A DNA stretch of 64,000 bases from Lepidodermella squamata (lineage: Eukaryota; Animalia; Gastrotricha), in assembly GCA_047495785.1 (NCBI GenBank), contig JBLDXI010000019.1:930001-994000 (forward strand), in the 5' to 3' direction. The translations under genes and the position numbers were made by a program. Below are positions 1 through 53,085 of this stretch, piece by piece. Position 1 is the stretch's first letter, and each line of letters opens with the position of its first letter. Below the pieces are notes generated by a model. It searched no databases, was not told where the DNA came from, and worked only from the letters and a program-made list of their open reading frames with translations.

Positions 1-273
1 CTCTCTGTTTATCACTCTGGATAATAAATGGATTGTGTGAAATTTGTTGATCATTTCGATTGGCCAGGTCAACTGGGACAAGGGAGCAATGTGACAATCG
101 AGATGTAACTGAAGTCAACGAGGAGTTGTGATTACCCGTGACATCATGCTAAATGATGACAGTTGTGACCAGAGGATGAACACACTAACAAGAGTACAGG
201 AACAAATGCAGAATTCTTGGTTGGAAACTGAAGTCAGGAGTAAAACTAACACGAAAATTGGAAAAGCAATCAT
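1..273 (-). CDS. 5' part of a putative secreted orphan protein (exons 273-190 and 148-<1), running off the window edge
   Basis: ATG at 273 gives MIAFPIFVLVLLLTSVSNQEFCICSCTL (signal-peptide-like). A 41-nt GT..AG intron (189-149, phase 0) follows, and the frame stays open to position 1. Not in the ORF track. Confidence 0.4.
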
Positions 274-509
274 TGTTTCCGCTGGTTATTTGGGCTATCA
301 AGTTGATTTGAACAAAGAGTTCAGTTCAAGGCAATAAATTGAAGAAGCAATGAACATTTGGTTGCTGAGAATAAGCTAAGAATGATCTGCACCTCAGCCA
401 GCCCGTGCTGGTGAGAAATACCTGACAGTACGGAACAGTAATAAGACATGCCGAATTTAGGAGGTAAAATGAAACTGTTCAATGAATTTGAGATGAGCAA
501 AGAAGAGAT

Positions 510-602
510 GCTGAATGCTGAATGCTGAATTTAAGGAAGAATGAAGAAATGCTGAATGCTGATTTCGCTGAATTTAGGATGTGCGACAATGCTGACTGCT
601 GA
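510..602. repeat. Degenerate GCTGAAT heptamer tandem repeat
   Basis: gctgaatgctgaatgctgaat at 510-530, with further degenerate copies to about 600. Confidence 0.7.
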
Positions 603-771
603 TCCTGATTCGTGAATGTGAAAAAGTCACTTGGATTGATTTGATTGATGATCACGAGTCGTGGAAATATTGATCGATTTAAGAATCAGGCATTATATCC
701 GATCTCTTCATTCAATCGACCGCATGTAGATATCTTATTTATTTATTTATTTATTTATATTTATTTTCTCA

Positions 772-2101
772 ATGGCAATGCTCGCAACGCCCGTCGTTAG
801 CGACTTCTTGACGGCAGAAGCTCGGCAAGCCGGCGCAACAACGACACTTGCTGAGCTGAATTATGGGCCTTCAGACACGCAAACGCTCTACCTTCGCATC
901 CGTCGGCTATCTGATTGCCGCACCGTCGCCAGACCGAACCCTCACACGCATGTCAGCAATTTAGTGGTGTGCGAGAGTCCTCGCTACATCAAAGGCGTCG
1001 TCATCATGGAGCGGTGGATCCACGCCAACGACCGGCTTCATGCTGATATGAAACTTGGCTCCTTTCTCACCATTCGCCACCTTGAGTTCCAGCTGGGAAT
1101 TGAGAATCACAATTACAGCTTGGTGGAGCACATGACCGACCTCGTCAGCCCGACCATGGAGCGCGGCCAAATCTCGAATTCGGCCGAATGGCCATGCCTC
1201 ATTGTGCGACACCCGGCTTCAATTACCTTGGGCGCTGAAGCAGCGTCCATGCTGGAGTTATCAGTTATTGAAAACGCTCGCTACAGTGATGAGTTTGATT
1301 TCCGGCCTCGGAACAGCGCAACCGAGCGCGAGATCAACGTGAATATTGTCGGCCAAATTTTCCATGAGACGTAGCTACGTCTCATGAAATTTTCGGCTTC
1401 ACGGACAAGGGCGCACGACCTGTCTACCAGGGCAACAGGAAAGTAGACGTTGAGCTGTGCATCGTCGAAATCCGGAACCTGAGCAATGACATGCTGTGCT
1501 AGTTATTTCAATTGAGCTCTCCAAATATTTATAAACTATGTTTTCCCATATTTCTTGTACAGCGATTTCGCTGTGGGGCCGTGCTGAGAAGCAGGCTATG
1601 CTGAAGGCCATGTCCGAGATGAACCAGGAAAAGCTCGATGGAGGCGACAATTTTCAGCCCTGGTGGCTTTATTTGCTGGAAGCAGGGGTCTCTGATAATG
1701 GCGTTGTTGGCACCTGTGCCAGGACTGTCATTTCCTTTGACAGGGTGCTGCGCTACGATCTGATTGCTAGAGGTGGCGACAATTTTGAAATTCGTCGCCC
1801 TCATACCGATGCTAGCTTGTTAAAATTTCGCCGTCGGCAGCAAATGAATCTGCAATTTCGTTCAGCTCGGCTGCCACAGCTGCCTGCTAGTATTGGCGAG
1901 CCACCGGCGAAAAAGCCACAGAACCCCACCTTAACTGACGCGCCTTCAGTCGAGTTTGGCGTCCAGGAACCTCAGCCAAACATGTTAAGCGATTTCCTCT
2001 CAAAAATCGAGTTTGATTCTCGTTTCGGCGATCTGCGGCGAGATGATAAAAGTGGTCTTATCTTCAGCCGGGTATCCAAATCTGCTATTCAACTGGTTTA
2101 G
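772..2101 (+). pseudogene. RPA70-like tandem OB-fold (ssDNA-binding) gene, disrupted by a palindromic insertion
   Basis: TTLAELN..TLYLRIRRLSDCRTV..NLVVCES..IKGVV..DRLHADMKLGSFLTIRH follows the RPA1 DBD-A pattern. Removing the 32-bp insertion at 1363-1394 lets the frame continue VNIVGQIFGFTDKG..VELCIVEIRNLSNDML; a short intron then leads to ISLWG..LYLLEAGVSDNG, the DBD-B pattern. The intron donor near 1496 is uncertain. Confidence 0.55.
1355..1394. mobile_element. Minimal hAT-like insertion: 24-bp perfect palindrome flanked by an 8-bp TSD
   Basis: AAATTTTC(1355-1362) CATGAGACGTAG|CTACGTCTCATG(1363-1386) AAATTTTC(1387-1394). An 8-bp TSD with CA..TG ends is typical of hAT elements. Confidence 0.8.
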
Positions 2102-3149
2102 TTATCCTTATTATTCATTTTTTTTTATCTAGGCCCCTATCGTCAGAGCTTTTTTGAGCCTGCAATACGCCAAAGTGCCACTGCCTCTATCTCCCGAAAT
2201 TGGGGATTCAAGGCCTTCACACCAGTAGATTATCACGATGGCGCCACGCATATGTTCAGAGAAATCAGATCTGCCTCCATTCGCGCCAAATTTCAGGATT
2301 GTCGCCTCGAAGCTTGACATTGATACCGTGAGATTTCAGCATTCATTGTTTTTAAAATTAAGTTTTGCATTTTATATTTTGCACAATGAGAAATTCCTGA
2401 AATCTCTCAAGCTGAATGATAAGTAGTGGTGAAATGCTACGTAAGTTTTTGAGTTTCGATATAATTGATTGAAATCGAAAATTTCATTCTGTTTAGGCTA
2501 CGATCGACGATCGATACTGCCGATACGTGACATCTCCTTTCTTTCCACATATTTCTTCATCTCTTCCAAATACTTAATTTATTGTGCCTACGTCTTCTCG
2601 CGCGCCCTTCATTCTTCCTTCGGACTTATTGTTTTTTTTACCTTCAAATGTGCTGTTGCAGTATATACCTATCTGCTGGCGTGACATTATTTATTATATA
2701 CACGCGGTCAATATTTTCCTACCAAAGTCAAATATATACATCTAAAAATACTTCTGTTCTGTTCTGTTGCAATTTGATATTTTATGTGCCACCAAAATCT
2801 CATGCTTACTCACTCGCGCCTCCTTCGATATTTTATAACATTTGAGAGGGCAAAAAAATTGGAAAATGTGCGTCTGGAAAATATTATTTCGCCATGAAAA
2901 TGCTCGACTTGTTTTCTTTGTTGTTAAAATATTATAATAGTATATGCCTCGCTCTTGTATTATAGTCTATGAAACTTTCGTTTGTTGTTGTTATGGAAAA
3001 ATAAATTGAATTTTCATGCAAGAGTTTTCGGGCAACGCATGAAGTTTTTATTTCGATTTTTTCAAATTTTAGTTGGTTAAATATCGCAAAATTTTGAATC
3101 GAATTCGTTCTCATGAGAATCGGCTTTCCGTCATCTGATCTATATAATA

Positions 3150-5410
3150 ATGAGCGGCAGGGACTACAAATGCGGTCTAGATCCGGCGGCGTTGGCGTTT
3201 TTCAAGGGTAAAAATGAGCATAAAGTTATTTTTTTGCTGCAAAATTAAGGATGATGTCAATTTTACAGGCAAGGAGAAAAATAACTACGTGGCGAAAGTT
3301 GACACGGCAGCAAGCAATTTTTTCAAGAGTAAATTTAGATATACAACTTATGAACCGGAATATTCAAGCTTTCTTTTATATGATGGAAATAGGTCGTGAA
3401 AAATCTTCAAATGCCTCGGCTGTACCGACAACAGGGCCGACAGCTGCTGTTGCGTCTAGCTCGTCACCTTCAGTTGGAACGTCGTCGTCGTCGGCGGCGG
3501 CTTCACCTGCAATCACTCAAGTCACCGAAGTGAAATGGAACAATGCTACATTTTTTGTTGTTGCGGTGAAGGGGGTGCGTTCTGATTGGGAAATTGAAGG
3601 CCTTCGCTCAGTCATACCTGGAAACTCGCAGTTAGAATTCGCAGCTAGTACAAGACTAGATGTCGACTACCGCGTTAGCGTCGTAGTCGAAAGTGAAATC
3701 GACGCGGCTTCATTTCAGTCCCTCGGCTTCGTTACTCTGCCGAATACGAAGAGGGTGAGCCTGGCTCAGATGGTTCCTTTTCGATCGAAAGAGCCTGGCG
3801 AGTTCAAAGTTTTCACTCAAAGTGATATTGCTGCCTGCCACACTGAAGATGCCTATGAAAACCTGCTTCCTCTGCGGGATTTATCAAGTTTAGCAGTTGC
3901 TAATAAAGTCATTGCAACATCGCCAGGGCTAACTAAGGCCAATGCAGATTCTGAGCGGTTAGTCTCTATGACCAACGTTGAGCTGAGGACAACACAAGAT
4001 GAAATTCTGGCTTCTCTGGAGAGGGTTGGTTGGCAACAGCCAATTATCAACATTGGTTTCGCGCAAACATCGGCATCTACGCGGAAAGTAGCCATACTTG
4101 AATTTGAATCTTCTTCAAAAGCTGCGGAGTTTGTCAGTAAGGTGGGCCACACGTTTAATCTCGAAGGACAAGATGTAGTAATAGATCGAATTGGAGCGAG
4201 CAAAATGCTGAATTTACAGCGAAATGAAATCGTTCGCGCCGATATTATCGATTTTCGTATTTGCTTCGTCGTGAAGATTCCCATGGGCGTCACGTTAGCC
4301 GATTTGAAAGCAGCTTACCCCGGGCCAACAATTTATTTGGAAACCTTTCATGGTGCTGATCGGCAAATGGCCGTCCTCGAATTCGCCACTGAAGCGCATC
4401 GTTCGGAATTTTTGAAACGTACGATTGTAACAATCGGTGATTTGGTAATACCCGAAAAATTCGCCCCTTCTTTTACGTCAAACTCCTCGAATTCCCCGGA
4501 TAAATTCTTCATCACGAGACCTAGTGCACCTATATGGCGCTGTTCACCGTCTGATCCCGCTTACTATGCTGCCAGCTTGGTCAATCTATGCTACATGAAA
4601 GCCTTTCTATCATGTTTTCGCTCGGATCTGGCCAATGCCTCAGACCACTCGATCGCTGGATTTCTCGACGAAAGTTTTAGCGGAGATTTCGCCGTTGACA
4701 TCGAGCCTCTCCTCAAGGATGAATTCGGTGAAAAGCGTGCCAAGTCGGTCTTATCGTTATTCGGGCAATGTCGCACACGTCGCCGCAGCTCGGCTATTAT
4801 GCGAAATAGCTACTATTGCTATTATAATAACGACGTAATGTGCCTCCGCCAAATAACCGGGCGCATTCCTGCCCTGCATGATATGAAGCAGACGTTGCTG
4901 AGCTTGTCCGATCGTGCGGTTGACGACTCGACGTTTTTCAAACGGTTTTTCCAAGCGATCGCAAGTTCCACGAGAAAGCCCGAATTCAAGAACTTTTTCA
5001 CGAAAACGAATTTGTCTTATTTTTCGCCGCGCTGTCATCGCTGCCCCCTAGTCAATCGAAATTTTTGCTTCATAATTTCCGGTCGCTTGACGAACCTCGG
5101 CCTTTTGGATGAACATTGTGTCGTCAATGTTCTGTACTATATCAACGATTTGAATGGGTCGCTGATGATTTACGTCGGAACGACGATTCACCCTCTTGTT
5201 CGCATGCGAAACCACGTACTAGCGATAAACCAATGTGATGTGCATTCATCAGTCGGCTGCTTTTTCACTCGTCGTCACACCCTACATTCGGCTATGCCGA
5301 TAAAATTCCACATTTTGGCCGTGGTTCCTAATTCATTCAACGCGGAACAAAGTTTAATTGACGCCACGTGGTCTTATATTTGCAACCTTGCTAGAGATTC
5401 TCGACGCTAG
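3150..5410 (+). CDS. Multi-RRM protein with C-terminal GIY-YIG endonuclease (exons 3150-3207, 3269-3328, 3393-5410)
   Basis: Two phase-1 GT-AG introns join the ATG at 3150 to the 719-aa ORF. RRM-like segments: LVSMTNVELRTTQDEI..VAILEFES and CFVVKIPMGVTLADLKAAY..MAVLEFAT. The C-terminus CHRC..HCVVNVLYYI..IYVGTT..LVRMRNH..AEQSLI..CN matches GIY-YIG motifs. Confidence 0.7.
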
Positions 5411-6315
5411 ATTTTTGCTGGAGATTTGCTTTTAAGTGCTGCAAAAGCAGCAGCGTCATCATCACCTGCCGTACTACTACTATGATAATCTAATATGTTT
5501 TTTCCACGAAAAAATTCGGCACGATTCGGTTTATATTGCTGCTGTGATGTTTTTCTGTGAAGTGCTCTTTCCCTATATATTGCTCACTGTCGCTGCTTCT
5601 CATTTTGATCGCACACTTATTATTATTTCGCTCATTATTTATCGTATTCTCTTAATTTTAAAGATGTCTGGACAGCAAAGCGCATTCTGTCAATTATACG
5701 GAATTTTTGTATAAGTAGCCATCTCAGATACGATACCCGGTTCGATTTATCTATTATACCCGACTTTTGTTGCTCTTATACTACTACACAAATATTTTGA
5801 ATTTTGTATTGTCCGCATTTGTTGTAATTACTTATGTCATATTCGCGTTTTTATGATATAATTTCAGTCTTATTTATTTGTTGGCCTCGATTCTACACTG
5901 CTTGGCATTATTTTCACCCGATCAACCCGGTCGGATTCGCCAAAAATTAGCGTAAAAATCGCATTTGTGTACATACCAACAACAACAACTGTTTACTTTC
6001 TTGGCAAAAATAACAAATTTGACTACCTATATTTATTTGTTGCCAGCTTACACTCTCATTCTGAAAATTTGATTTTATTTCATCGTCGAGCATTTATTGC
6101 GACTATATATAATAGAAAAAAATGATAATAAATTTCAAACGATGAGGAATTATTTGCGTGTACGTTTTTTTCGGCGAGAAATTAGGCAACAATTGAAAAG
6201 CAGGCTTTCATTCACAAAATAAGGAATATGTACAACAATGCCGAAGAATCGAATGTTCGAGATCAAGAGGTGTTCTCTTACAGCAGCAGCATCATCTTAT
6301 AAAGCATCGCTGCAT

Positions 6316-6730
6316 ATACCGTACTGCGCCAGAAATGTTGGGCCTGTCCTTTATTTTTGCAAAACAAGTCGAAACCCCGTCTTATATGTGAGACCGCCCT
6401 TTATTTGAGGCCTGACCTTAATCGAACCATTCTCAGCTCATCACGCGGTACAACGCATCCAGTCGCCTCTGAATCGACCTCTAAATAGATCGGCATATGC
6501 TCAGTTTTTTAACCCAAGGAGAACGCGATGATGATGATGATGATGACGACGTAATATATAATTCGAATTCCGAATTCCTTTAAACTATTTCGAAAGTTAT
6601 CAAAATTTATCATAAAATGATGATACACGCGTGGGCGACCTGATCATGATTTGAGGCCTGACCCTTATTACTATTTTGAATGACCATTGGGCCCCGTCTT
6701 ATATTTAAGGCCGACTTTTATACGAGGCTG
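6316..6730. repeat. Dispersed short direct repeats resembling a Tc2/pogo-like MITE remnant
   Basis: ccccgtcttatat at 6375 and 6692; tttgaggcctgacc at 6404 and 6650; TA-CCGTA at about 6317. Confidence 0.35.
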
Positions 6731-7071
6731 ACTAACTTTGTCGGACATTGGAATGGCGCGACTGCTGACTGATATCACGCTCCGCAGCTTCCATTACACC
6801 ACCGTGCACGAGGTACTAATATCAACCCCATCAGATATAGGTCGTAAATCTCTTTTGGATCATCGCTAGGTTTTCAGCCATGACTTGTGGGTCTAGCACC
6901 CTTTGTTTACAGTAGTAAATAGAAAAACTTCTCAGCTTTCAGCATTCATATTACATGTGAAATATGAATCAGCCAACCCAAACTGTTTTTTTTTCGCTTT
7001 TAAATCCTTGAAATATTACGGTTTCTTTTACGATAGAACAATAGTTCTTAATTTCTTAGGATAATGCTGTC

Positions 7072-7563
7072 ATGATTCATAACTTTCTAACGTTTTTCCT
7101 CGCCTCAATCGCCTTGCATTTGGGGTATGTGATCGGGTCCTCGAAATGGGTCGATTTTACTGAAAGCGAAGACCCGCCAGAAATTCGAGGCGAAAAGGCT
7201 AAAATGCTCTACGCCAAAATGTCGCCTGAACAACGCTACGTCATCGAGGCGGTAGCAACTGTTCTCGAGAGCGAGTACGTCAAAAAATATGCCGCTCTGG
7301 CTAGGCGAACGTCGAATGAATTGAACCAAAGGACGGAGGAACTAGCGGAATTATCGTCGAAAATCACTGAAATGGTGCAGATCACTCATCAACGCAACTG
7401 GACTAGTCTGATGGCCGAAGCGACGCTATCGTGTTTAGCCTGTGCTTTACCTCTACTGCTGATTTACATTCTTAGAATGGTGATGAATCAGGAAAAAATG
7501 ATTGCGGAAGCTATCCGGCTGCAAAACCAGCAAAATGTTATTTTCGGTCGGGCGCCACTGTGA
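7072..7563 (+). CDS. Orphan signal-peptide/coiled-coil/TM protein (paralogue A)
   Basis: 163-aa ORF with hydrophobic N-terminus and C-terminal TM segment; AATAAA just after the stop; shares motifs with 8095-8601. Confidence 0.65.
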   Translation: MIHNFLTFFLASIALHLGYVIGSSKWVDFTESEDPPEIRGEKAKMLYAKMSPEQRYVIEAVATVLESEYVKKYAALARRTSNELNQRTEELAELSSKITEMVQITHQRNWTSLMAEATLSCLACALPLLLIYILRMVMNQEKMIAEAIRLQNQQNVIFGRAPL

Positions 7564-8094
7564 AATTTTATGGCAATAAAGTGATGAAACTTGCAAAGCT
7601 GTTGTTTATTATTTTTCAAAGCCTTTCGAGCGAAAAGCCACATCGAGTCAAAGTTCATGCTGCGTCTCTTGTTTGTTGAAAAAGATGAGTATAAAACTGT
7701 AATTGGGCAATTAACAACTGCCAGTATTCGCCATTAGTCTCCATCTATCCCTTGATGATGCTGACGTGGCAATTTTTAAACATCAATGTAAACACATAGA
7801 ATAGAAGATTCGCAGGCAAAAAATGAGCGTATAATGAAAACCATACATCTATACAAAAGACTATGTACTAAAAGAGAGAGAGAAAGAGAGAGGCGGAGGG
7901 AGGGGGCGCTTTTTATTTATAACAAAAAAACCCCACCGCATTTTTTCTATTTATTATCATAAATCATTCCAGTGTTTTTGTGCCTTTATTGTATAAATAA
8001 CGCGCGGCATAGAACTTTGGACCCGGCATATACAGCAGCAGCAGCACAATACGGGTAACAATAGCAGTTTTCTCGCAATCAACCAGACAAAACG

Positions 8095-8601
8095 ATGTTG
8101 CATCTGAACTCGCCATTCGTTATTAAATTGCGGCAAATCACGTCGTGCTGCCTGTTGTTCGTGCTTTATTTCAGCCGCGGCGTTGTCAGCTTCGATGTCG
8201 AGGACGAAATTTACCTGCGAAACCAGTTGGCCATGCTGACCGAGGAGCAGCATGAAGCCTTGGAGAAGATAATCGACGTTATTCGAAGCGAGTATTCTAA
8301 AAAATGTACGAATGTGATGTACGACGCGTTCTTCTCGCCGGCTGATACTGATAGTTATTACGAACGAATCGAAGGCCCGTCTCTGCTGCCGCCGGCTCCG
8401 CGCATCGAATCGTCATCGACACGGTATGCTAATTCAAACATGGCCGAAGCGCCGGCGAGATTCTGCCCGCCTTCTCCGCCTTGCAAATGCGAAAGGTGTC
8501 TCTCGACTATGGAAGTATTTTTGACGAGTCTTGCCGCAACTTCGCTCGTACTCGCCGCCTGGCACCTTCGGACATCAGTATTTCAGCTTATCAAAAACTG
8601 A
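8095..8601 (+). CDS. Orphan signal-peptide/TM protein (paralogue B)
   Basis: 168-aa ORF; AMLTEEQHEALEKIIDVIRSEYSKK aligns with AKMSPEQRYVIEAVATVLESEYVKK of paralogue A; C-terminal hydrophobic segment. Confidence 0.65.
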   Translation: MLHLNSPFVIKLRQITSCCLLFVLYFSRGVVSFDVEDEIYLRNQLAMLTEEQHEALEKIIDVIRSEYSKKCTNVMYDAFFSPADTDSYYERIEGPSLLPPAPRIESSSTRYANSNMAEAPARFCPPSPPCKCERCLSTMEVFLTSLAATSLVLAAWHLRTSVFQLIKN

Positions 8602-9451
8602 CTCATGTAGCAGTGTTTTACGTCAAATGCCAATCTTTTCACCAAAATTCAGTTCTTTCCTGATAGTAAAAACAGATTTTTTGTCGTGTCATGAATTTTT
8701 TCGTTGAATTGAGTATGAGCGCCAAAATTCGAGCTTAATCCAGCTCAAAAAATGAACCCTTTATGGGTATCATTTCTGAAAGAATTACTGAATTATTTTG
8801 CAGTATTACATAAGTATACGTTACCTGAAGTTCACATGTAGATCCAATGCAAGCTCCATGCTTATATTTTACTATTTCTATCATGTCAGATGGCTTGTAA
8901 AGAACTATCAGAGGCAATCACACAGGAGCACAGGAGCACATCCAGGAGCAGAAGCCAGGAGCCAGGAGCACATCGAGGTTCATCTATACTCCAACGAGAA
9001 GATTTCCAGTATCGATATGAATTTCCAGCATTGGGTATGCAGTCTGAGGAGCAAACATTGAAGATTTAAATAAAATTTATTAAATTAAAATTGGATATAG
9101 AAGGGTATCGGGTTGCTAAGAAAAAAATCAAGGGAAAATGCGCGAACAATTTGAAACTATTAAAAATGAAAGTGTGTCCCAAATGTCCCAATTTCCAGTC
9201 CCGAAATGTCCCGTTAAAAGAAAATGTTTTCGGTGAAAGGAAAATTGCCTAATTTGGAGGAACCAATCCAGATTTACTTTTAGTGTAAAAAAGTAACAAA
9301 AGTCCAGATGTACCAGCGGAACATTTACTGTACAATCGCAAAAAACGGTGTCAGAAAGAAATGGGTTTAAAAAATAAGTTTAAATGTTTAGCTATATATT
9401 AGAGGCTCGTGAATTTTTGGTTTTCATTGTTATCGTCAGATCTTTAGATTC

Positions 9452-11941
9452 TCAATCTGTCATCGAGACTTTATTCGGATCAAATTTATCCGCAAATTTG
9501 GGCACTACGCCGAAGAGGACTATCGGGGCGCTGATAGCCAGGGTTCCAGCGATCGTCATGAGAAAATTGTCGATAACTCGAGAAACGTCCTGCCACGATT
9601 GGAAAAGATATCGGCTATTTCCTGTCACTTTCGACGCCATCTCCAACGTGATTTCGTCACTGCTTTCGGCATCACCTAAAATTTTAACAGGGCTAGGCAC
9701 GATTTGTCTCGATAACTTATTCGCGTTACTGGCAGCTAGGATCATTCGTGAATTTTCGTAGTTATGCCCCCAGTAGCTGACCATCGACTGGGTGTTGTTC
9801 GTCATCTTGGAAAAGCCTTTATCAGGCTGCCAAACTAGGGGTGCATTCATGCGATCGCTGTATGCTTCATTCAACTTGTGATAAATCGGCGCTGTGGATG
9901 AGATTGATGAATCATCGCGCGACAAGGTCAACTTCGGAATCGGAGGCGGGGTGCAAGATTTGCAAGAAGACCGCCGCCTCGGAGCCATTGCCGGGTGGTC
10001 TATAATGACACATTCCAAGGGTTGGCGGACATTATTTTTAGCATTGGCTGGCTTGCGACGGTTGCGGCACATCATGCAACAAAGAATGAACTTCGGATGC
10101 GGTATTCGGGTCAGCCATTGCGGCATTTTTCGCTTTTGTTCAGCGAAAATTGCCATTTTTGCGACCAGGATTGAAGTGACAACACTGAGGGCCGAAACTA
10201 TGACCACTGTAAAGATGTAAATAGTCAATAGGGGCACGTCCGTCGATGTGCTAGGCTGGAAAACAAGAATAAATTTTCTTCATAGCAACCGTTGCTAAGA
10301 AAAAGCGTCATTTTTTCAATGCCTTACCAAGTGTGAAATAGCGACGGTTTGAAACACAACTACAGATAGCAAGGTTGTAGTCGACGAGCCAACACGTTGG
10401 GGATGGGTGACAGGCACGAGGAAGAACATGATTTGAACACCTGACAGAAATACGGCTGGTAAGATGACGTTGAGTAGGTGATAGATTTTCGCGCGTTCGA
10501 TGTGCAGGTAGAACTGGACGCGGGCGAATGCCGTTCTAGCTCCGACCTGGTTCATGCTTGAATAACCGCCCCAGTGTATAAGTTGCCAAGTTTCGCCGGG
10601 TAGGTACATGCGAATGTCGACTGGCGTCTTCTCAGATCGGAGTGTTATATTCATGAAACGAATGTCCAAGGTCGGGCTCTCAAATACGAACCTGAATGAA
10701 AATTTGTTGATATATTGTAGCCCCTAAGTTGAGCAAATAACCACAGAAAATAGGCGGAAAAAGGTCTCAAAAAAGTCTGAAATCAGAGCTTTCTCAAAGC
10801 CAAAAAAATGAGAAGGCTAATCAGCTTTTCAAATGGAAAAAAATCGGACAAATTTGCCCCATCGGGTAAAATACCGATCACTTACCGACCAATTACCATC
10901 GGGTTTTTCGGATATTCTCCTTCTAAGTTTAAGCGTTATTGAAATCGCGGATAATTGATGGGAGATGCTATTAATGGGTTAAATTTTGAAAAATGTGCTC
11001 GCGCAATTTTTGAGACACGAGGTATTAGTAGGCAGCCTATTATTTACCAGCAAGTCTGTTTATCGAATGGGAAGAATCGAAGGTTGAGTTTGCAGTATGA
11101 TTTTACGATACCAGTCGGGTGCCACCAAAGTCTGCCGGTATGTTCGACTTTGATCTCGAATCGAGTGTCTCGTATCACATCGTAGACATCAGATACACTA
11201 TTCCTATAAGAAAAAATAGTGGAGTGAATTTTGGTAAGAAATTTTTATTTTTACAGAATTGCGATGTCCGGAGTCCAAAGAGTATTGGCACTTACTACGA
11301 CCTCGGTCACATTTGCGAATAGCTTCGGATCCCAGCTCAGTCTTTTATCTTGCCAGGTCTTTGTTATCGAGAAAAAATTAGTTTGGAATTTAGGTTATAA
11401 GGCGTCACCTACCAGTTGTAGTCGTACAGTCGTTTCCAAAACTTCCGATTTCTCAATTAGCTCTTGAATTTTCAATGGGATCAGTGTCATCTAAAGACAA
11501 TTTCTAATAGGCAGAATGAGTAAATTTTGCATTTTTTACCTTGACATTTATGGGCCCTTCGTCTCTGTTAGGGTGTTTGAAAAACGGATTTCCCAGTAGC
11601 TCGATGACATTATGCCGGCCGATGGCCAGGGCAGTTCGATGGCCAGCAGTTGGATATCCTGCTACTTCCATATACTGATTGATGTTATACAGCTGCTTGT
11701 TCAGACTTTGCGACGGGCTGGCTTTTACACTTCCATTCCTATTGCCATCTTTAATCAATGAATCATCAGGATTCGCAGGGTTATTTGTGTTAGTCGCGTT
11801 TGATTGTAGTTTGCTTGAAGGTGCACCAGAGCGTAAATGCAAAACTGAATGCCCGGCTATTGTTAAAGGCTTGAAAACACCCAAATCTGTCGAAAGGGTA
11901 GAGTGGCAAAAATTTGCTAGCAGAAGAGCAATGACCAGCAT
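9452..11941 (-). CDS. Cys-loop ligand-gated ion channel subunit (nAChR-like, non-alpha), about 6 exons
   Basis: Signal peptide; spliced exons give WQDKRLSWDP..LWTPDIAIL, the Cys loop CKLNLRFFPFDKQTC, M1-M3 (YHLLNVILP, TTTLLSVVVFQ, PSTSTDVPLL) and M4 (VSRVIDNF). Confidence 0.93.
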
Positions 11942-43185: not shown

Positions 43186-46100
43186 TCACATGTAGGTTTC
43201 AAGCGGCCGGGGTTCGTACGATACATCAGACATGGTTGTTGAGTTGACCGTTGAGGCGGACGGCGGCCGGTCGGTGGCTGGTAGAAACCGTGGCAGGGTG
43301 TCTAACGCGACATCTTCCTCATTCCGGTCTATCCTATGCCTCGGTTGAGGGTGCCTCTGCACGACCTGCGATGTCGTATAGTGTTGCTGAGGCGGATAAG
43401 CAGCCGCTGCTGAGCCACTACCCCGCCACGAGTCGAAATCAGGCGCGTATTGCTGACCCGCCCCGCTGCCCCAAGTTCCAGACGGCATGGGCTGGCGACT
43501 CGATGCCATGCCTATTGTACCAGGCCAGTACGACGTCTGCATGTCCGTATTCGTTGACTGCATGGTTTGATGGCCTGGCTTTTGGTTCGAGTCCCAAGTG
43601 AAGAACTCGTCTTCACCGGGCGGCATTCGTTGGTAACTGCCTGGCGTTAGCGACGACGGCCGAACTATGCCGACGGGTCGATTTTGCGACGTCCTAGTCA
43701 TTCGACCCGGGTTGTTCGGATCCATGTCCATTACACTGGTATCCAAAGTGTTCCTCGACGCAGTTTTCGAGCGGAGACTAGCTCGTAGAGAGGCGCGTCT
43801 TTGGAAACGCTGAACTTGGCGCCGGCGAGATTTGGAAAAACAGACAATAAGGAGGATGATTATTGCAATTAGAATCAGCCCGCCTATCACACAGGCGACG
43901 ATGACCGGGGTCCAGGCGTAATCGGCCGGGGTGTATGGGTCTGATTCGCAAATGAATGGTTTCAATTTCTGGCACTCGAGTTCGGTCAAGAAATTCATCT
44001 GCAGAGCAATGCAGCCGCTGGTAACCTCGCGATTTCGCACCCATGTCTGTATTCTTGCGTCATAGTTTACTTGGCGCTGTGATACTAAGGCGTAGAGGAA
44101 CTGAGTTCGATACAACGCATCGGCAAGCCAACCGCGCTCCAATCGGCACAAATCCTGGGCAGTTCGATAGTCTGCAACGCCACCCATGTAACGGTAACAG
44201 CGGCTTTCGTACAACGACCAGCCAGGTAAACAGTGACCCTAAAAATGATTGAAAAAATTAGAATTACTTTTTCCGATCGCGTATAACGTAGCTAAAGCTC
44301 AATGACAAGTTTTGCTGGCTTATTCTTGGGCCTGAAACGACATTCGAAGATTTTACAAATATTTCCTCGAATTCGCGAATTATTTTGCTGAATTTAGAAT
44401 GATTTTATATAAATTTTTAGAAAACTCAACACATTTCAGCACACATTTCAGGGTTTTATGCCTTTTTATCATTTCTATCTTTCTTTCTAATGGTTGAAAG
44501 TGATTTCTCTGCCATTTTCAACCAAGTCAAATAAACACGAATAATGTTTTACTCCACTTATTTCTTATGGATTCAATTTCATAAGAAAAAGTAAATATTT
44601 ACCTGCAGCACGGACGAGTTACTTGTGTAAAAGTCGTCGATAAGAACAGGATACAGCTGCCAGTCTTTCGACCAGTCCCAAACACGGGCTTCCACGAAAT
44701 ATTTCTGCGATTCGCCCCACCAATTGCGACTCGCATCAACCCTCAAAAACGGCTCAATAGTAGTCATGAGCGGCGCGTCCGAGACCAGAGGAGTCGTCGT
44801 GTAATAGTAGGCCGGTTTGAAAGTCGGCACTGTGAACAACGTGTGGTTAGACGTGACAATGTCATACTCATTCTCCCAGTTCATAAAATAGTTATCGTGC
44901 AGCGTATGCCGCGGGCTGTAGCACAAAATTGTCGGACGGTACTCGCGCCACGAATTGTTAACCGGAACTCCGACGGCTGAGTTGTTATAAATATGGTTAT
45001 ACATCAACGAAGTGCCCCGGTCAATCCGCTCCGGCCCAGCCAACTGAATATTATGCGAACCACTGTTGTTATACACAACATTCGATGTGAAATTAACAGT
45101 CGCCCCGGTTAAATTGACATTAGGCAACAACCGCCCGGCCTTATTTTTCGCAATCCAGTTATTAGAGACTTGAACGACCTCTAAATGATGGCCTTCAACA
45201 TGCAGCGACGAGCCGTGCGTGTTTCGAGATATGTAATTATTCGAAATATTAGCCGATTCTAACGGGACACCGCCGCCCAGGGTGAAAACTCGCACCCATA
45301 AACCACCTCGATTTCTCAGAATCAAATTACGGGTGACTGACAACGATTCCGAGTTTTGCAAATCGAATTTAATCGTCGGATCTGAGGTTAAATTGTAAAT
45401 AGCCAGGCCGTTATCGACAAAAGTGCAGTCCTCGAGACGAGCGGCTGGGGTCATATCGCCAACAGCAGCGTAATTGACTGCTCCATCTTGATTCCGCTCG
45501 AATTTCACGCGTTGAATTAGCGACTCGGGTGGTCGGGTTTGACGTTCAGCCGGCATGGAGAATATTTCGGCGATAAAACCGTACTGACCAGCGGCGCCGC
45601 TAGCGTGAATATGCACGCCTAATCTGTCCTGGAAAGGCTGGGTCGCGTACAATTTTCGCCGTTCAATTTCCGTCGCATTCGACCGAATAGCAGCGATTAA
45701 GGTGGTGTTCATGAAAATATCACCGTCATACAACTCGATAACATTTGCGTAGAACGGGTCTTCGTACAAATTCAGCTGCAAGAACCGAATCGCAAGCCGT
45801 TTGTTGCGAACTTGGGCCTTGAAATCTTTCACGCAGTCAGCTGGTGCATACGAATATTTGTAGAAAGCCAAAATCCGCATACCGACCATGACAGTTTTCT
45901 CGACCGTGCAAATATCGATGAGGCCATAGGTTGAATACGGTAGAACGTTATCAACCAGTGGTAGAAAAGCGCTCATTTGGTCAGAGGCAGCGGCGCCCTG
46001 GGCGGCTAAAACTTTGATTCCGTGGCCTAAATTGTCGGTAAAACGCGAGTCTGTGACTACAATACGGCTTTGAGGCGCGACGAGATGAACGGCGTCCCAG

Positions 46101-49100
46101 GCACATTGTTCGATATCGACGTTGTCTAAAATCGGTGCGTGGTAGATCGCTTCAATGGCAGCAGCTCTCTCACCGTGGAGCAACCCAGCGCCACGAATTA
46201 TTGCGTTTTGAATAACGCCAGATCCGCCTAGGCCCAACTCAGGACTAGCGGCTGCGAATCGAATGTTGCCCCAGTAATGAGCGGGTGGGTTCAAATTTCG
46301 CTGGCCACACCGAAGATATATGTAATCTTCCTGTTTCACGCATCGAACCAGGCGGTAATTGTATTGGCGAACACATAGATCTAAATTCTGCTCATCCCCA
46401 GCGCAGTGATAAGCCAACCGCCAATATTCACGATGAAAATGGGTATGGAAGCCGTAGATGATATAATCGTAATGTTTCGTCCGTTTGATTCGCGCGTTGA
46501 CAGAATCAAGGCCTAATTGGCGGCAAATAACGCCGGCAGTTCGTTCCGATAACGCGTAGTCACACATGACTGACCATCGGTTGATAGTGGCGTTCCAGAT
46601 CTCGACAAAGCCCTCAGTTACCACAGTCGAATCGCCGGCAGTCGGGCCGCGGTGTAGTCGAACTTTCGCGATTGGGTACTCGCTTAAGGTGGATCTTTTG
46701 CGGCGCAAAACCACGTCAGGGTAGACGGTTTGAGGCGGTGGGAAATAGGGTCGGAGAGAATCAGCTGCTGGTAGGAACTTGACCGGGGCTAGTGGTGTGC
46801 CAACAACCCGCAACAAGCCCAACACGAGAATTCCGATGTGAGGGCGAAACCTCAATTCAACTCCTTCCCTGATTTCTAAAGTAGCACCAGGCATGACGGT
46901 AATATCGCTATCTACGTCATAGGGGCTGTGGTCGATAGTCAATTGGACTAAACCATACAATTTCCCCCTTAGAGGTTGATCCGCGCGGAAAGTGGGTCGT
47001 TTCGTTGATTCTCGCGATAACGCAGTCGGGCCAATATTCGACGAAGTAACGAGAAAGGGGTTATAAATCGCGGTTGAGAAAGTGTTCCAGTCGTCAAAGT
47101 CCATTATTCGTTTATGAATTGAAACTTGATCAGCGACGCCCCACCAATTGAATCGCGAATCAATGGCGGTTTCAAAAGTTGACGCCCGCAACCCGGCGAC
47201 CAACTCGAAACGCAGCAATGGATTTTGAAATACGTTCCAATTCACGGTCACGTTTTGAACACCCAATATAGCAACTGCGTATGTCCGAGGTACCACCAGA
47301 CCATATCCGTCTTCATCATCGTCCAGAAAACCGCCGACACTCTCCGAAAAGCTTCCACTGATTCGATCTCTTTTCGTTCGACTTGAGGTGGACGATGCAT
47401 TTGGACCAGGGTGGCCAAATCCGATGTAGTTATTGACGTCTCCGGTAACCAAACCAGATTGCGGCTGGACGATCGGGTATTGCTTACGTTTACCACCCGA
47501 TGACTCTTGCCGGTCATTTGGCGTCGGACCAGTTTGCGTTATCGGCCAATTATCGATCAGGTAATTATAGCTGAAATCTGCCCTAGCCGCCTCGGGTTGG
47601 TCGACGTGACTCAGCATGTCGAATTTTATGACGTAATCGCAATGATTTAGCGTTATGTTATTGTTGAAGAAGTCAGTCTGCTTCTCAGTGCCGGAAATTG
47701 AGATCAAACCGCGTCGACATTCGTTTTCAGTTATCACATTATCGACAAAGGATAAATTAGCATGATGACCAGCCAGCGAAATTTCAGCCCATTTATTTCT
47801 GGCAAAAGTTGTCGAGTTGATTTCTATCGAGTGATTTAACATGAAACGGGTCGAATTCCAATCGCCGAGAACGCGAGGCATTTCGATTGAAAAAGTTGGC
47901 CCGCCGCTGTTGTGTTCGAACAGCGAGTCTGAAACCTGCCAAGACCACAGATTTGTGCCAAAAGGTACGCTGTTATGTTCCATAACCACGCCGCCGCCAC
48001 GATTTCGAGTGATATTAGTCGCGAAAATTCGATAGCGAATGTCACCAAGTCGAGCTGGGCGCTCCATAACATCGCGTTCTGGGTAGTAGAATTCGTCGTA
48101 TTTACTGATGGATTGCACGTTAATTCCGGCCTGAGCGTTGTTGGTGATGTCGCAGTTTATCAACTCAACAAGTTCGTAGTGACGTCGGCGAGTGACCTCC
48201 ATTCGATAACCAGTCGGCTGGTTGTAATGCTGAGCCACAATGCCGTAGGTATTGCCTATAAATTGAATCAGTATAATCTTAAATTTGTCAAATATTAAAA
48301 TTCCTCCTTAAAAATTCAGCAATATACAAGAATCTTATTCTTAGCGAAATCAATTCAGCGAATTTCAGCATTTTATCCAATCACTCAACGCCAAACGCCA
48401 AGGTAAACATGAATCGCTCATAAAAACGAAGGGTGTATATTGCCAAGAAATTTAGTCAAATCAGCCGATTCTTATTTCAATGAAAATCGTATACTCACCT
48501 GATATTTGGCCATTTTCAACTCGAATTGTCGCTGGAGGTCTATACCATGGCCAGTACCACTCCTCGATCTTAGCAGGAGGTAGAATAGTGATATCAAGCG
48601 CTTTCACTATGATCGCCAGCCGACCGCTCTGCGTTCGATTTACCCGCCATTCGATCGCCAACACGCCAGAAGACGAGAGAAACGGGAAAAACGTATCATC
48701 GCGTTGAACGTCAAAATGCCTAGTAGCCGGGTAAGTACCGTCATGGACTATCACTTGCTCTTGCAGCTCATTAGGGTTGAAATCGACCACATCAACGTAG
48801 ATGTGCCGCAAATTTGTTTGACGCAGGGTGACAACAAAAACCTGTTGATCATTCGGTTTTTCGTAGGTATTCGGTTTCGAGACCAAAAACAGTAGTTCAT
48901 CATCGGGAACTAGGGCATCGGTAGTGTCTGGTATCACCTTGGCATACGGCCCTTCGAACCAGCTAACGAAATCCCACGCCTCGGAGTCAGTGAATCGTGG
49001 CATGTAGTGCAAACCAGCACCGCCGTTCTCGTTATTACGAAGAACAGGATTTTTCAGCCAAATGTAAGGCGATCGCAACACGACTCCATCGCCCCAAGAA

Positions 49101-52100
49101 TCCGTAACTTTAAGATCATCTATCGGATTTAGCAGCATCGGATCGCCGTGGATAATCGATAGACCGGTGGTTAAAGAGTCTTCTAGCGTCAGACTGCGAA
49201 TGATAAGGTGGTTGTAGTCGATCTGAATAGCTGGTTTGAATAGCGGTTCAACTTCATCGAGGAGACCAGCCCCTCGAACAATGACGTTATCGAGGATATT
49301 GCCGGGTTTCGAGGTGGCTGTAAATCGCATTCCGGCCCACGTTTGCGGCACGCATGATACCCAAACGTCTTGGCCGTGGTCGCACGTGAATTCCGACGGC
49401 AGGTCGCTGTAACAGGTGTGGAGAGACAAATCATACTGGCGACATCGCATGTTGCTGTAGTGAATTGGCATGGAAGCAGGCGCCCGGGGACGAGATGAAC
49501 GTTTGATCGAGGCTAGAGAGGGTGGATATCCTTCTTCTTGGAACGCCACCGTATCAGGGTGCCAGTCAGTAGGATGAAGCGCGAGTCCCAATGCTTCACA
49601 GACTTTCATTGCTGACTGAAGGCGCCAACCGCGAGAGCAAATTGTACCCCATCCCTTGCCAGGTATGTAGATTTCCAAGCGACCTGAAAGTTGATAAACA
49701 GGAAATAATTATAGTTATTAACTACGGCAAGTTTCAAAATAATTGAAATTTTCAAGTCAGCAGAATTTAAAATATCTGAAAAAAAACAGATTTTTTCTGA
49801 ATTTTTTGCGTTTTGAGTTCAATTTTCAACATATCTTTAGGCTTTCTACTCAATAAATTTCAAGAATTACCTGAAAACTTGTCTGGGCCATCGACTAATC
49901 GAACAGGGCGCAGATGTCTTCGGAGTAAATTAGCCATAGCATTAGTATCGTTGCCAACCTCAGCCAGCACAGTCTCATTCAAAGCATCTCCCAATGGAGG
50001 CGCCCCTGGTTGCGAAAGCCCGGACAACAGATGAATATTCTTTTGAAGATACTCAAAAACGGCAGAAGCATTCGACAAATTAACCGCATCTTTCGGAATC
50101 GGGAGCCCGGGAATATTCGGCTGGTAGATCTCCATGACAACAGGTGCATGGGGCTGACCTCTAACGTAACATCTACCTCGAATTATCATGCCAACATTAG
50201 CCGAAAATTTCAACTTCACGCCAGGTGAGATGTTGATGATGTAATCAGGCGGGATATTAATATCTTGATCAACGATATATTCACCGCCTAGAATCGAAAT
50301 ATCTCGGGTGGCGTTAGTCAAAACTCCACCGAGTAGACCACCTCGAATAAAATCGGGCAAATATTTCGGCAAGTATGACGTGGTATATTCAACGAAAAGC
50401 CGATTATCACTCAGAGCGGGGTAGTATTCGATCGTAGCAAGGTCATATCGACGAGAATGGTCAATAATTCGGTCATAGATGTACTGATGATCAACACGAC
50501 CCCACCAGTTCAACGAGCAGTTGATGGTAGCAGATGATAATCGCAGCATTGTTGACACTTCGTACTTACTCTGAGGGTTGAACATCGCATTTCGGTAGAA
50601 GACTATGTTACTCGATGATAAGACGACCACGGCCGGGGTGTGACTTCGAGGTATCGAATAACCAGGTGGCATTCTTATGTCATTTTGCCGCAAGTCATTC
50701 AAAACAAATGAGACCTGTTGCACAGATGAGCCTTGGACTAATCTGGCGAAAACTGCGAACGGCCCACTGTTATTCACGAATTTGTTCTGTTCTACCGTGA
50801 AATTCACAGGAAGTGAAAATAATTCTCGCATTAATTGCCGGTCATCTGTGTTATCTATTACTAAAGCGCCTCTAGCGTGATCTCGAATCTCGTTGTCCAG
50901 AATTTTTCCGATTGCGTTGACAAGTGGCACCATTTTAATGGCGAAATCTCGATTTTTAAGGAAGACGTTATGATATAAAGTGTAGTTTTGAATCATGTTA
51001 TGCCGTGGGTGATAGCAGCATTCGACAGAAACTCCACCGTAATCGTTTCCTTCAATCCGACTGTCATTAACCATGAACAAAGCGCTCCGGCAATAATTTC
51101 CGAAAAACATCCCCAAGCCGCTCGTATTCAAAATTTCCGAACGCCAAATTTCAAGAGTTTGATTCACCTCAACTCGACTTTGGTTATATTTATAGAGCTG
51201 GAGGTAAACTCCTTTCTCGTCATTTCGATGAATTTTACAGTGATGGAAAACTTGACGACCGCCCGAGTAACTGATATTTGCACCTCCACCTAAATTACCG
51301 ACCAGGCTGGTTCGGTTTAATATCACGTCACCGGCTCCATATATAACTCTCAGGCCGGAATAGCCGTTTTCAGAAAGCTGATTGTCGTTAAGAAGGACTT
51401 GGCCCCTCATGTCTCTGATGTATACGCCTGAGGCCATGTTTCTGTCCATTTTCGATCTATCGACTGTCATTTCCGGGTAGGGATAAGGCGCTGGTCCAGT
51501 AGCGATTTGAATTATGAACCGGATGCAGTCGTCAATGAAGTAACATTGCGGAGCTCGTAACCAACGAAAATCTATCCGCATAACTGGAGATGCTATAATA
51601 ACGGATTGTGGCATTGTTCCGTTCTGCAAATGAATAGTGTGAGCAATACGCTCAAATCCGATTTTTCCAGAATAGAAGTCCAGCCAGCCGTCAGCTTCCG
51701 GGTCGACAAAAACCTCGGAAAAACTGACCATAAACATTAAAGACTGATCAGTGTAATAACTTTGTGAACACGGCGGCGAAGCCTTCGGAGTTCCAACGAC
51801 TAAAAGCGGATAGAACTGGTTTTGATACAAACTTGGGCTTAGGCAGAAATCGACGGCATTCGGAGTTTTCCGTCGATTGTTATTAATTACATCCAACCAA
51901 ATTCCGTGACCTCCATTGTCAGTTATATTCGAATCACTCACAACCATTCTACCGTCTCGTATCGCGGCAAAAATCCCTGATCCTCGATTGTGCTGTAAAG
52001 TGACACCGGATAATATAGCGGTGCTGTCTATGTCAGTTAAGTTGACAGCATCCATCGCTGAATATTTAACGGTAACGTTTCGAAGAATAGGAGCATAAGG

Positions 52101-53085
52101 GCTAGCAGTCAAGGCCGAAATCGGCCGACCTGTATCATCCACGCCGGCGAATTCGATGTCAACGAATTCAAGAACTGATTTAGATTCGTTCAATAACCTG
52201 CGCAGTTCCGGCGTTTTTTGCAAGACGAATGATGAATTGTAGAATGTAATTCCTTTCCAGTAGCCGATATTATTGAAAAGATCTTCTCGAAATCCGAAAC
52301 ATTTCAGCCCGGCAAGTGGTTGTAAATCGCATGCGCCGATGTTTACGGAAATATTGGCATGACCAGGGCAGGTTAAAACTCCGCGGTCATTGGCAGAACA
52401 CGCGGGGTTGTCGAAAACCATTTGAGCAGTGTCGTTATGTCCGTACCACCACCGTGAAATGTTCCACATGGGCTGTTGTGTATAATGGAATGTAAAGTTG
52501 CCGTCGCGGAAGCCCATTTGTCGACAAGCAAATCGAACGTCCGAACGAGTCCAACTAAGTACAGTAATGAGTAAATAATGATTCATAATACTTATAGAAA
52601 TTGCATTACTTCTTGTAATTAGTGCAAACGTCACGCCATCTGTTGCGGTAAAATATTTGCACCCGACCATCTTGTGCATTCACTCCGTCGACGAGTCTGA
52701 TGGTTCTGTCCCAATTCATGTGAGGTTCGATCGATGAATTCAGTAGTCTTGTAAATTTTATATGGGCGTATTGCGAACCCTGAAATCAGCAAATAATTTT
52801 CAATACGAAACGCCCGACGAAAGATTTTCAATTTACCTGTGCCTTCAGGGTGCCGTTGCAGATAATACCGAATCCAGCCGAAAAACTCACGACAACGCCA
52901 GGCTCAATAATCAATGTTCCTTTTGGGGCGATCCGAATGTCGTGATCAAACTGGAATGGGCCATCTCGTGCCAATAAATGCGCTTCTCTTGCTATTGGCT
53001 CCTTGGGATCAAAGTCAAGATGTGCCGATTCGGTAGGAGAGAGACCAACCGCCAAACAGCATAGCAGTATAGACAGTTGGTGCAT
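43186..53085 (-). CDS. bark: Bark beetle/anakonda-like scavenger receptor (SRCR, CUB and beta-helix repeats, C-type lectin, TM), multi-exon
   Basis: Signal peptide; three SRCR starts (IRLVDG, VRLVDGP, VRLHRG); repeated NWWG motifs; C-type lectin; TM segment; C-terminal PLETYM resembling a PDZ-binding end. Confidence 0.9.

Follow-up and report, generated by a model that had tools for sequence, protein, structure and literature searches.

Introduction

To our knowledge, every known eukaryotic mobile element carries a transposase, a recombinase, a Rep protein or a reverse transcriptase (RT). In Helitron-like elements of the HLE2 type an RPA gene lies upstream of RepHel and an endonuclease can follow the helicase, the GIY-YIG type having been seen in one HLE2 family (PMC11417382). 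GIY-YIG is likewise the endonuclease of Penelope-like elements (PLEs), and stand-alone copies of it occur in the Terminons of rotifers (PMC8557442, PMC6431247). Here we analyse a 64,000-nt stretch of the Lepidodermella squamata genome (the window; C19:930001-994000, in an assembly of 121 Mb and 151 contigs) which carries, side by side, an RPA-like gene with predicted OB folds (gene A) and ORF3, a gene for a protein with RRM-like folds and a predicted C-terminal GIY-YIG nuclease domain. The pair recurs across the genome and encodes no polymerase, Rep, helicase, RT or integrase, and we tentatively read it as a lineage-restricted selfish two-gene module, mobile or formerly mobile, whose copying mechanism is hypothetical.

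A first-pass annotation of the window had joined four genes at 772-8601 into one possible mobile cassette. The four co-oriented groups of open reading frames (ORFs) that it described are present on the plus strand (772-1374 with 1538-2101, 3251-5410, 7072-7563 and 8095-8601); two of the four genes form a recurrent unit, and to that extent the cassette observation holds in part.

Results

A gene pair repeated across the assembly

In the window the pair is laid out as follows (aa, amino acids):

772-1499, plus strand: exon 1 of gene A, with a predicted RPA-like OB fold; ORF1 is 772-1374
1538-2101, plus strand: exon 2 of gene A (ORF2), completing a probable second OB fold and ending in a variable tail
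3251-5410, plus strand: ORF3, 719 aa, the sole intact copy of its own sub-lineage
3959-4447, plus strand: two confidently modelled RRM-like folds of ORF3 (aa 237-312 and 337-399)
5099-5407, plus strand: predicted GIY-YIG domain of ORF3 (aa 617-719), with all catalytic-type residues

ORF3 lies ~1-1.5 kb downstream of gene A on the same strand, and the spacer between them (2102-3250, plus strand) held no conserved coding sequence in tblastx comparisons with the C18 and C21 cassettes, nor any Pfam match in ORF 2582-2845, the one small ORF scanned there. On searching the assembly (the exons of gene A one by one, with no joined two-exon query), we found exon 1, exon 2 and ORF3 arranged as in the window, in order as in orientation, at three other loci, with 25-35% aa identity to the window copies. 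C3, C9, C17, C18, C19, C21, C33, C42, C55, C56 and C74 denote contigs of this assembly, C19 being that of the window, and negative positions lie upstream of the window start.

C18a: exon 1 at 494955, exon 2 at 495860, ORF3 at 498395-500413; intact
C18b: exon 1 at 517509, exon 2 at 518716, ORF3 at 521239-523221; intact
C21: exon 1 at 2613134, exon 2 at 2613727, ORF3 at 2616753-2618099; one in-frame stop

Remains of both genes also persist, in decayed or rearranged form, at four more places, namely C3 (minus strand), C55, C19:1477k and C56:283k. Genome-wide the nuclease is present at ~14 loci and gene A at ~20, with about a dozen other places having gene A without a nuclease partner. Fragments of the window's own sub-lineage, 70-96% identical in nucleotide sequence and bearing stop codons, lie on C55, C42, C33, C3 and C21 and at C19:1477k, that is, at six ORF3-fragment loci, on five other contigs and at C19:1477k. 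Altogether, this distribution indicates that gene A and ORF3 have been duplicated together, repeatedly and over a long time. The first-pass annotation had proposed a self-search for multi-copy co-occurrence and had named single-copy genes, unlinked elsewhere, as the outcome that would speak against a mobile element; gene A and ORF3 are multi-copy and linked, and the co-occurrence is confined to these two, leaving out the membrane ORFs downstream.

Nearly as likely as a selfish module is, in our judgement, an ordinary lineage-specific host family: a coupled binder and nuclease, spread by segmental or ectopic duplication with birth-and-death turnover, whose function could be, for example, repair or defence against single-stranded DNA parasites, and whose fragments would be pseudogenes. 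The two C18 copies, 22.5 kb apart and with extra gene A pieces close by, suit such a family. Less easily accommodated by it are the internal fragments of 0.6-1 kb and ~90% identity on several contigs, paralogues at 25-31% identity without relatives among 1.84 billion proteins, the scrambled copy with an ORF3 piece embedded in gene A (C19:1477k), and the C18 homology itself, which stops just past ORF3 and does not run on as a tandem block.

Some of these loci are composite in structure. In the scrambled copy (C19:1476663-1478417), gene A pieces of only 67-73% identity flank a 1-kb piece of ORF3 that matches the window at 91%, and this insert replaces ~360 bp of gene A; the arrangement looks like the product of template-switch repair or of gene conversion between sub-lineages. 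The C18 cassettes (493488-501907 and 516060-524709) are mosaic in age, with a synonymous divergence (dS) of 0.38 in exon 1 of gene A vs 0.05 in ORF3, a difference that points to gene conversion across ORF3. Some 3.5 kb upstream of each of them lies a decayed fragment resembling gene A (C18:491209 and 514122), and a similar upstream OB-like piece is present in the window unit (about -674 to -592) and at C74; given its presence at C18a, C18b, the window and C74, this piece appears to belong to the unit.

Purifying selection on intact and broken copies

The ratios of nonsynonymous to synonymous rates (omega) were as follows:

C18a versus C18b, ORF3: omega 0.13
C18a versus C18b, ORF1: omega 0.15
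C18a versus C18b, ORF2: omega 0.45
window versus C55, C42 and C19:1477k, ORF3: omega 0.16-0.20
window versus C33, ORF3: omega 0.39
window versus C3, ORF2: omega 0.19

Neutral decay of the fragments since their split from the window copy would predict an omega of at least 0.5. Since the values lie below 0.5, the fragment copies or their parents were functional for most of their history and destroyed recently; the copies evolve under purifying selection and are later lost by truncation and decay. Purifying selection in every copy compared, including those now broken, is also what a host family would show.

Gene A is RPA-like and split by an intron

The two ORFs of the C18a copy are joined in phase 1 across a 203-nt intron, which begins with a GTATGT donor and ends with a pyrimidine-rich CTCTCAG acceptor, and homologues of exon 1 and exon 2 stand in the same order at other loci (family alignments A2 for exon 1 and A3 for exon 2, the latter with 20 invariant columns over four loci). 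From these sequence features, we take ORFs 772-1374 and 1538-2101 to be two exons of one spliced gene, and splicing is again in keeping with a host family. The window copy has kept an acceptor of the same phase and has no in-phase splice donor. Conserved gene A reading resumes at 1395 in a different frame and runs to a stop near 1497-1499 in three-frame translation, past the following feature:

1355-1394, no strand assigned: footprint in gene A, with a 32-bp insertion at 1363-1394

The 8-bp sequence AAATTTTC is present at 1355-1362 and again at 1387-1394, and the insertion consists of a perfect 24-bp palindrome at 1363-1386 (CATGAGACGTAG plus its reverse complement) followed by that second copy of AAATTTTC. 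Because of the 32-bp insertion the gene A frame is shifted and the window copy is broken; with the 32 bp removed, the frame stays open through sequence alignable with the C18, C74 and C21 copies. The break is recent, and with ORF3 intact the window copy of the pair is half broken. The region 1355-1394 resembles the scar left by excision of a cut-and-paste transposon of the P or hAT type, one that makes 8-bp target duplications. The 12-mer arm of the palindrome had no second occurrence in the window or the other loci examined, and no parent element was found there.

With a profile of exon 1, the sole match in the PDB was 2k50 (E=0.0013), an archaeal 'Replication factor A related protein', and the strand pattern was the classical one of OB folds; exon 2 gave nothing in the same search. 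The AlphaFold2 (AF2) model of exon 1 has the strand order b1-b2-b3-a-b4-b5, but a pLDDT of 45, and fold searches with it returned as top matches almost only OB-fold nucleic-acid binders, all weak (Z<=3.5). Gene A is like RPA70 and RPA-related proteins in this profile fit, strand pattern and fold matches, and differs in that no Pfam RPA family matched its ORFs and no C-terminal zinc OB domain of the RPA70 kind was detected; its model is poor and its binding a prediction from sequence. The ESM Atlas gave no usable match, and the gene A profile found its own family alone over the genome. We conclude, with moderate confidence, that the gene A product is RPA-like, that its OB folds number no fewer than one and probably two, and that it is likely to be a single-stranded-DNA binder.

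ORF3 joins RRM-like folds to a predicted GIY-YIG nuclease

Pfam at default thresholds had no match in any of the ORFs named in the first-pass annotation, and PADLOC and NCBIfam gave nothing significant (E<=0.1 was reached only by one E1-E2 match of 10 bits, E=0.043). In ORF3, residues 237-312 and 337-399 adopt the b-a-b-b-a-b order in AF2 models (pLDDT ~75-80), with a possible third RRM-like fold of low confidence at aa 93-170 (3527-3760). In Foldseek the best matches to the ORF3 folds were the tandem RRMs of FIR, PUF60 and hnRNP A1 (E~1e-6), and several of the RRM matches are proteins crystallised on single-stranded DNA; moreover, Pfam RRM_1 matched the C21 copy of ORF3 (E=4.6e-4). The models thus give good support to RRM-like folds in ORF3. 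Alignment A1, which sets the window protein beside homologues at three other loci, shows by our reading that the aromatic positions of RNP1 are partly substituted, and RNA binding by ORF3 is therefore not implied.

The C-terminal domain was compared over six copies (alignment A4), which are 28-38% identical to the window copy and in which Y629, Y641, G643, R651, H655, E699 and N712 are invariant. These residues show GIY-YIG spacing: Y629-x11-Y641-x-G643, then R651, H655, E699 and N712. Searched alone, the domain scored 20.8 bits against PF01541 (E=4.8e-4), just under the gathering score of 22.6 bits, and 3/6 members match. The sole PDB match of the domain profile was T4 endonuclease II, a GIY-YIG enzyme (E=0.42), and in the ESM Atlas the segment retrieved a GIY-YIG cluster first (score 0.95, 178 shared features). 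The AF2 model of the region has the b-b-a-b-a order at a pLDDT of ~30. A GIY-YIG nuclease domain at the C-terminus of ORF3 is accordingly a prediction with good sequence support. The first-pass annotation had called an OB protein and an RRM-GIY-YIG nuclease; of these calls the OB fold stands at moderate strength, and the RRM-like and GIY-YIG parts are well supported.

Searched against 1.84 billion representative proteins, the ORF3 profile had four matches (E 1e-4 to 1e-3), all to multi-RRM proteins and all in the RRM region, and a word search with ORF3 found no relatives. By these sequence searches, the pair has no known relatives outside this genome and appears to be lineage-restricted.

Comparison with Penelope-like elements and homing endonucleases

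A GIY-YIG domain of this kind could have come from a PLE or Terminon, as a stand-alone Penelope-type endonuclease whose RT was lost or was never there. GIY-YIG is the endonuclease type of PLEs and stands alone in Terminons (PMC8557442, PMC6431247); ORF3 likewise comes from an invertebrate and resembles the Penelope endonuclease (cd10442) and Terminons in its C-terminal GIY-YIG domain, which has the R, H, E and N residues, and two lineages have a CxxC motif ahead of the domain. The differences are nevertheless several. The CCHH hallmark is missing from the core, with a cysteine between the two motifs in 0/6 aligned copies, as is the CX2-5CxxC linker. Pfam found no RT in ORF3, and in place of a Penelope-type RT the only RT nearby is that of a Ty3/gypsy pol gene, whose long terminal repeat (LTR) stops short of the unit. 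An Rfam scan of 1-9500 detected no hammerhead ribozyme (E<=1), and the locus is internal to a 3.6-Mb contig. A Penelope type was rejected on the CCHH, RT and hammerhead tests, and we regard such a derivation as highly improbable.

Free-standing GIY-YIG homing endonucleases (phage Seg, I-TevI and T4 endonuclease II) have the same core of Y, YxG, R, H, E and N together with separate nucleic-acid-binding modules, and offer the closest working analogy: a selfish gene consisting of a nuclease alone that spreads via host repair. ORF3 differs from them in being nuclear and of an animal, in having RRM-like partners instead of zinc-finger or helix-turn-helix modules, and in its linkage to an OB-fold gene.

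Comparison with Helitron-like elements

The first-pass annotation had proposed a non-autonomous or partial Helitron-like element, or a new one. On a Helitron-like reading, the RPA-like gene and the C-terminal endonuclease would be what is left of a Helentron-type layout, moved in trans by Helitron-like elements of the genome. By analogy, the gene order does resemble the HLE2 and Helentron layout, with an RPA-like OB gene upstream of a large protein ending in an endonuclease (PMC11417382), and the genome has 41 PF14214 (Helitron_like_N) Rep matches. Even the nearest of the 41, though, is 159 kb away from a gene A or ORF3-type locus, and no Helitron-type ends were recognised in the repeat search or at the C18 right boundary. 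Within the pair, Pfam found no HUH Rep (Helitron_like_N) in any cassette ORF, and a PIF1-type or other helicase was found in none of ORF1, ORF2, ORF3 or their C18 and C21 homologues (E<=1-10); ORF3 has no trace of either Rep or helicase. The nuclease family also stands apart from the others of the genome, its profile matching 0/24 of the other Pfam GIY-YIG loci, and the gene A profile returns its own family alone. The earlier remark that no Rep/HUH or PIF1 helicase gene is visible in the window agrees with these results, and the search for linked RepHel, RT or transposase genes at the other copies, which it had suggested, yielded none. A Helitron-like origin of the pair is in our view improbable.

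Boundaries of the unit

The unit starts at about -1292 (C19:928709), ~1.3 kb before the window. In the C55 copy the upstream region (-854 to -57) is fused straight to ORF3 positions 3986-5309, and from this junction C55 is an internal-deletion derivative, and the upstream region and ORF3 belong to one unit; a copy of this kind is not readily expected of a host family. On the right, the homology between C18a and C18b ends sharply 158 bp past the ORF3 stop codon, with no poly(A), hairpin-CTRR or terminal inverted repeat (TIR) at that boundary. In the window the 3' side comprises two features:

5411-6313, plus strand: 3' stretch of the unit, non-coding; collinearity with the C33 copy extends to 6258
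6314-6747, plus strand: dispersed repeat of ~434 bp with sharp common ends; >30 copies, 72-96% identity

The fragments on C3 and C21 run from 5690/5954 onward at 94-96% identity and reach 6747, placing the 3' end of the unit near 6258 (from C33) or 6747 (from C3 and C21). The 434-bp repeat, which bears out the repeat debris noted in the first-pass annotation, has copies that share query bounds of ~5543-5976, some with a longer middle, and internal sub-repeats of ~20 nt of the form GAGGCCTGACCYTTAT (families D1 and D2). It is contiguous with the 3' region of the unit in the C3 and C21 fragments, and is either the tail of the unit or a separate small element inserted there.

No LTR or TIR brackets were found around 772-8601, and no further conserved ORFs were detected in spacers or upstream by tblastx or, in flanking ORFs, by Pfam. 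Upstream of the window lies an open Ty3/gypsy pol ORF (C19:924723-927797; 1,024 aa, with RT, RNase H and integrase), followed by a 387-bp LTR-like piece at -1699 to -1313 with copies on C17 and C9 that are 98-99% identical. We considered and rejected the pair as Ty3/gypsy cargo: the LTR ends at -1313, the homology of the unit begins at -1292, and no second LTR brackets the genes. Further upstream there is a perfect 447-bp inverted repeat (-8198 to -7752 and -6218 to -5772).

A copy in an importin-beta intron

A gene A copy with an open frame of 232-242 codons lies antisense in a ~1.8-kb intron of an importin-beta gene (C74:~1517790-1519585), the flanking exons of which splice to a continuous importin sequence. 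Such a copy within a host gene intron is a further point that sits poorly with a host family. A second gene A-like fragment is found ~1.9 kb on (C74:1516562), past the next importin exon. Two possible marks of insertion were discarded: a 12-nt direct repeat near both intron ends was not trusted as a target duplication, with ~4 such pairs expected by chance by our estimate, and the 'TAG|G' at both intron junctions is mere splice consensus.

Neighbouring genes

Downstream of the unit the window continues with two small membrane genes:

6770-7719, plus strand: host segment containing ORF 7072-7563, outside the unit
8095-8601, plus strand: second small ORF, with weaker hydrophobic ends, single-copy

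The segment 6770-7719 has one other copy, 90% identical in nucleotide sequence and with its ORF intact (C19:918379-919366). ORF 7072-7563 encodes a single-pass orphan of 163 aa, with an N-terminal hydrophobic segment and a transmembrane segment at ~113-140; its paralogue 18 kb upstream (C19:918682-919170) is 91% identical in aa, with an omega of 0.23 indicating purifying selection. No relatives were found by word search, and no cassette locus has a copy. ORF 8095-8601 has no DNA copies elsewhere in the genome and no Pfam match, and is faintly similar to ORF 7072-7563 (BLASTP E=0.001 over 39 aa). The two paralogues (7072-7563 and C19:918682-919170) bracket a 17-kb transposon-rich island with the Ty3/gypsy pol, the LTR, the cassette and the 434-bp repeat. 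A single four-gene cassette was rejected, the membrane genes never accompanying the pair elsewhere: with one local paralogue or none, and absent from other cassette loci, they do not belong to the cassette in which they had been placed and are ordinary host neighbours and bystanders.

As for the remaining surroundings, the spacers described as AT-rich are so, but mildly (GC 0.40 at 2-4 kb and 6-8 kb vs 0.42-0.50 elsewhere), and the run of conserved ordinary genes past 9.4 kb is real, with these host genes identified there: a Cys-loop channel, an H2A variant, OPA1, NOT2/3/5, CrcB, Dpy19, dymeclin and amnionless. The long uninterrupted ORFs for animal-type proteins in this run indicate that the host is an intron-poor animal. 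On the minus strand, the adjoining ORFs at 44579-48238 and 49860-52679 (1,219 and 939 aa), with SRCR and right-handed beta-helix domains, are probably tandem paralogues.

Discussion

We tentatively favour a selfish two-gene module because of the linkage of gene A and ORF3 across loci, the dispersed fragments, the C55 deletion copy, the sharp C18 end, the C74 intron copy, the signs of selection, the predicted domains and the lack of relatives outside this genome. Together, the dispersed fragments, the C55 derivative and the C74 intron copy tip the balance somewhat, though not decisively, towards mobility. Spread of the module would hinge on a nick or break introduced by the ORF3 nuclease. The single strand exposed there would be bound by the OB protein, possibly aided by the RRM-like domains, until the unit has been copied by host repair or replication, much as in homing. 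Alternatively, another element may mobilise the pair in trans.

Several points weigh against such a module. No known mobility enzyme is found in or beside any copy examined, and neither the repeat search of the window nor the C18 right boundary revealed terminal repeats, a target-site duplication or an empty site; copy number is low (~14 nuclease loci and ~20 gene A loci), gene A has an intron, and its intact copies resemble normal genes. Other transposons may have dispersed the fragments, and low omega values fit a host family with birth-and-death turnover just as well as competing active sub-lineages of an element. The OB-fold and GIY-YIG models are of low confidence (pLDDT 45 and ~30), and the nuclease activity and nucleic-acid binding are predictions from sequences and models. 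The missing transposase-like genes and termini, and the low copy number, would be expected of a host family. It is unlikely, though conceivable, that the pair is an autonomous mobile element of a new kind, which would need no transposase, Rep or RT to spread in an animal nuclear genome but just a GIY-YIG nuclease with RRM-like single-strand-binding modules and an RPA-like protein of its own, and would be copied by host repair after a nick or break. The pair may instead be a host nuclease system, one that would recognise and cleave the single-stranded intermediates formed by the many rolling-circle elements of this genome.

If a module of a nuclease and a single-strand binder does multiply alone, it would represent a new way of spreading, near to the homing of phages and organelles. 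If it is a host system instead, it would be an unusual pairing of GIY-YIG, RRM-like and OB-fold domains in a genome rich in rolling-circle transposons. In either case the family is intact in few copies, without known relatives, and small enough for bench tests.

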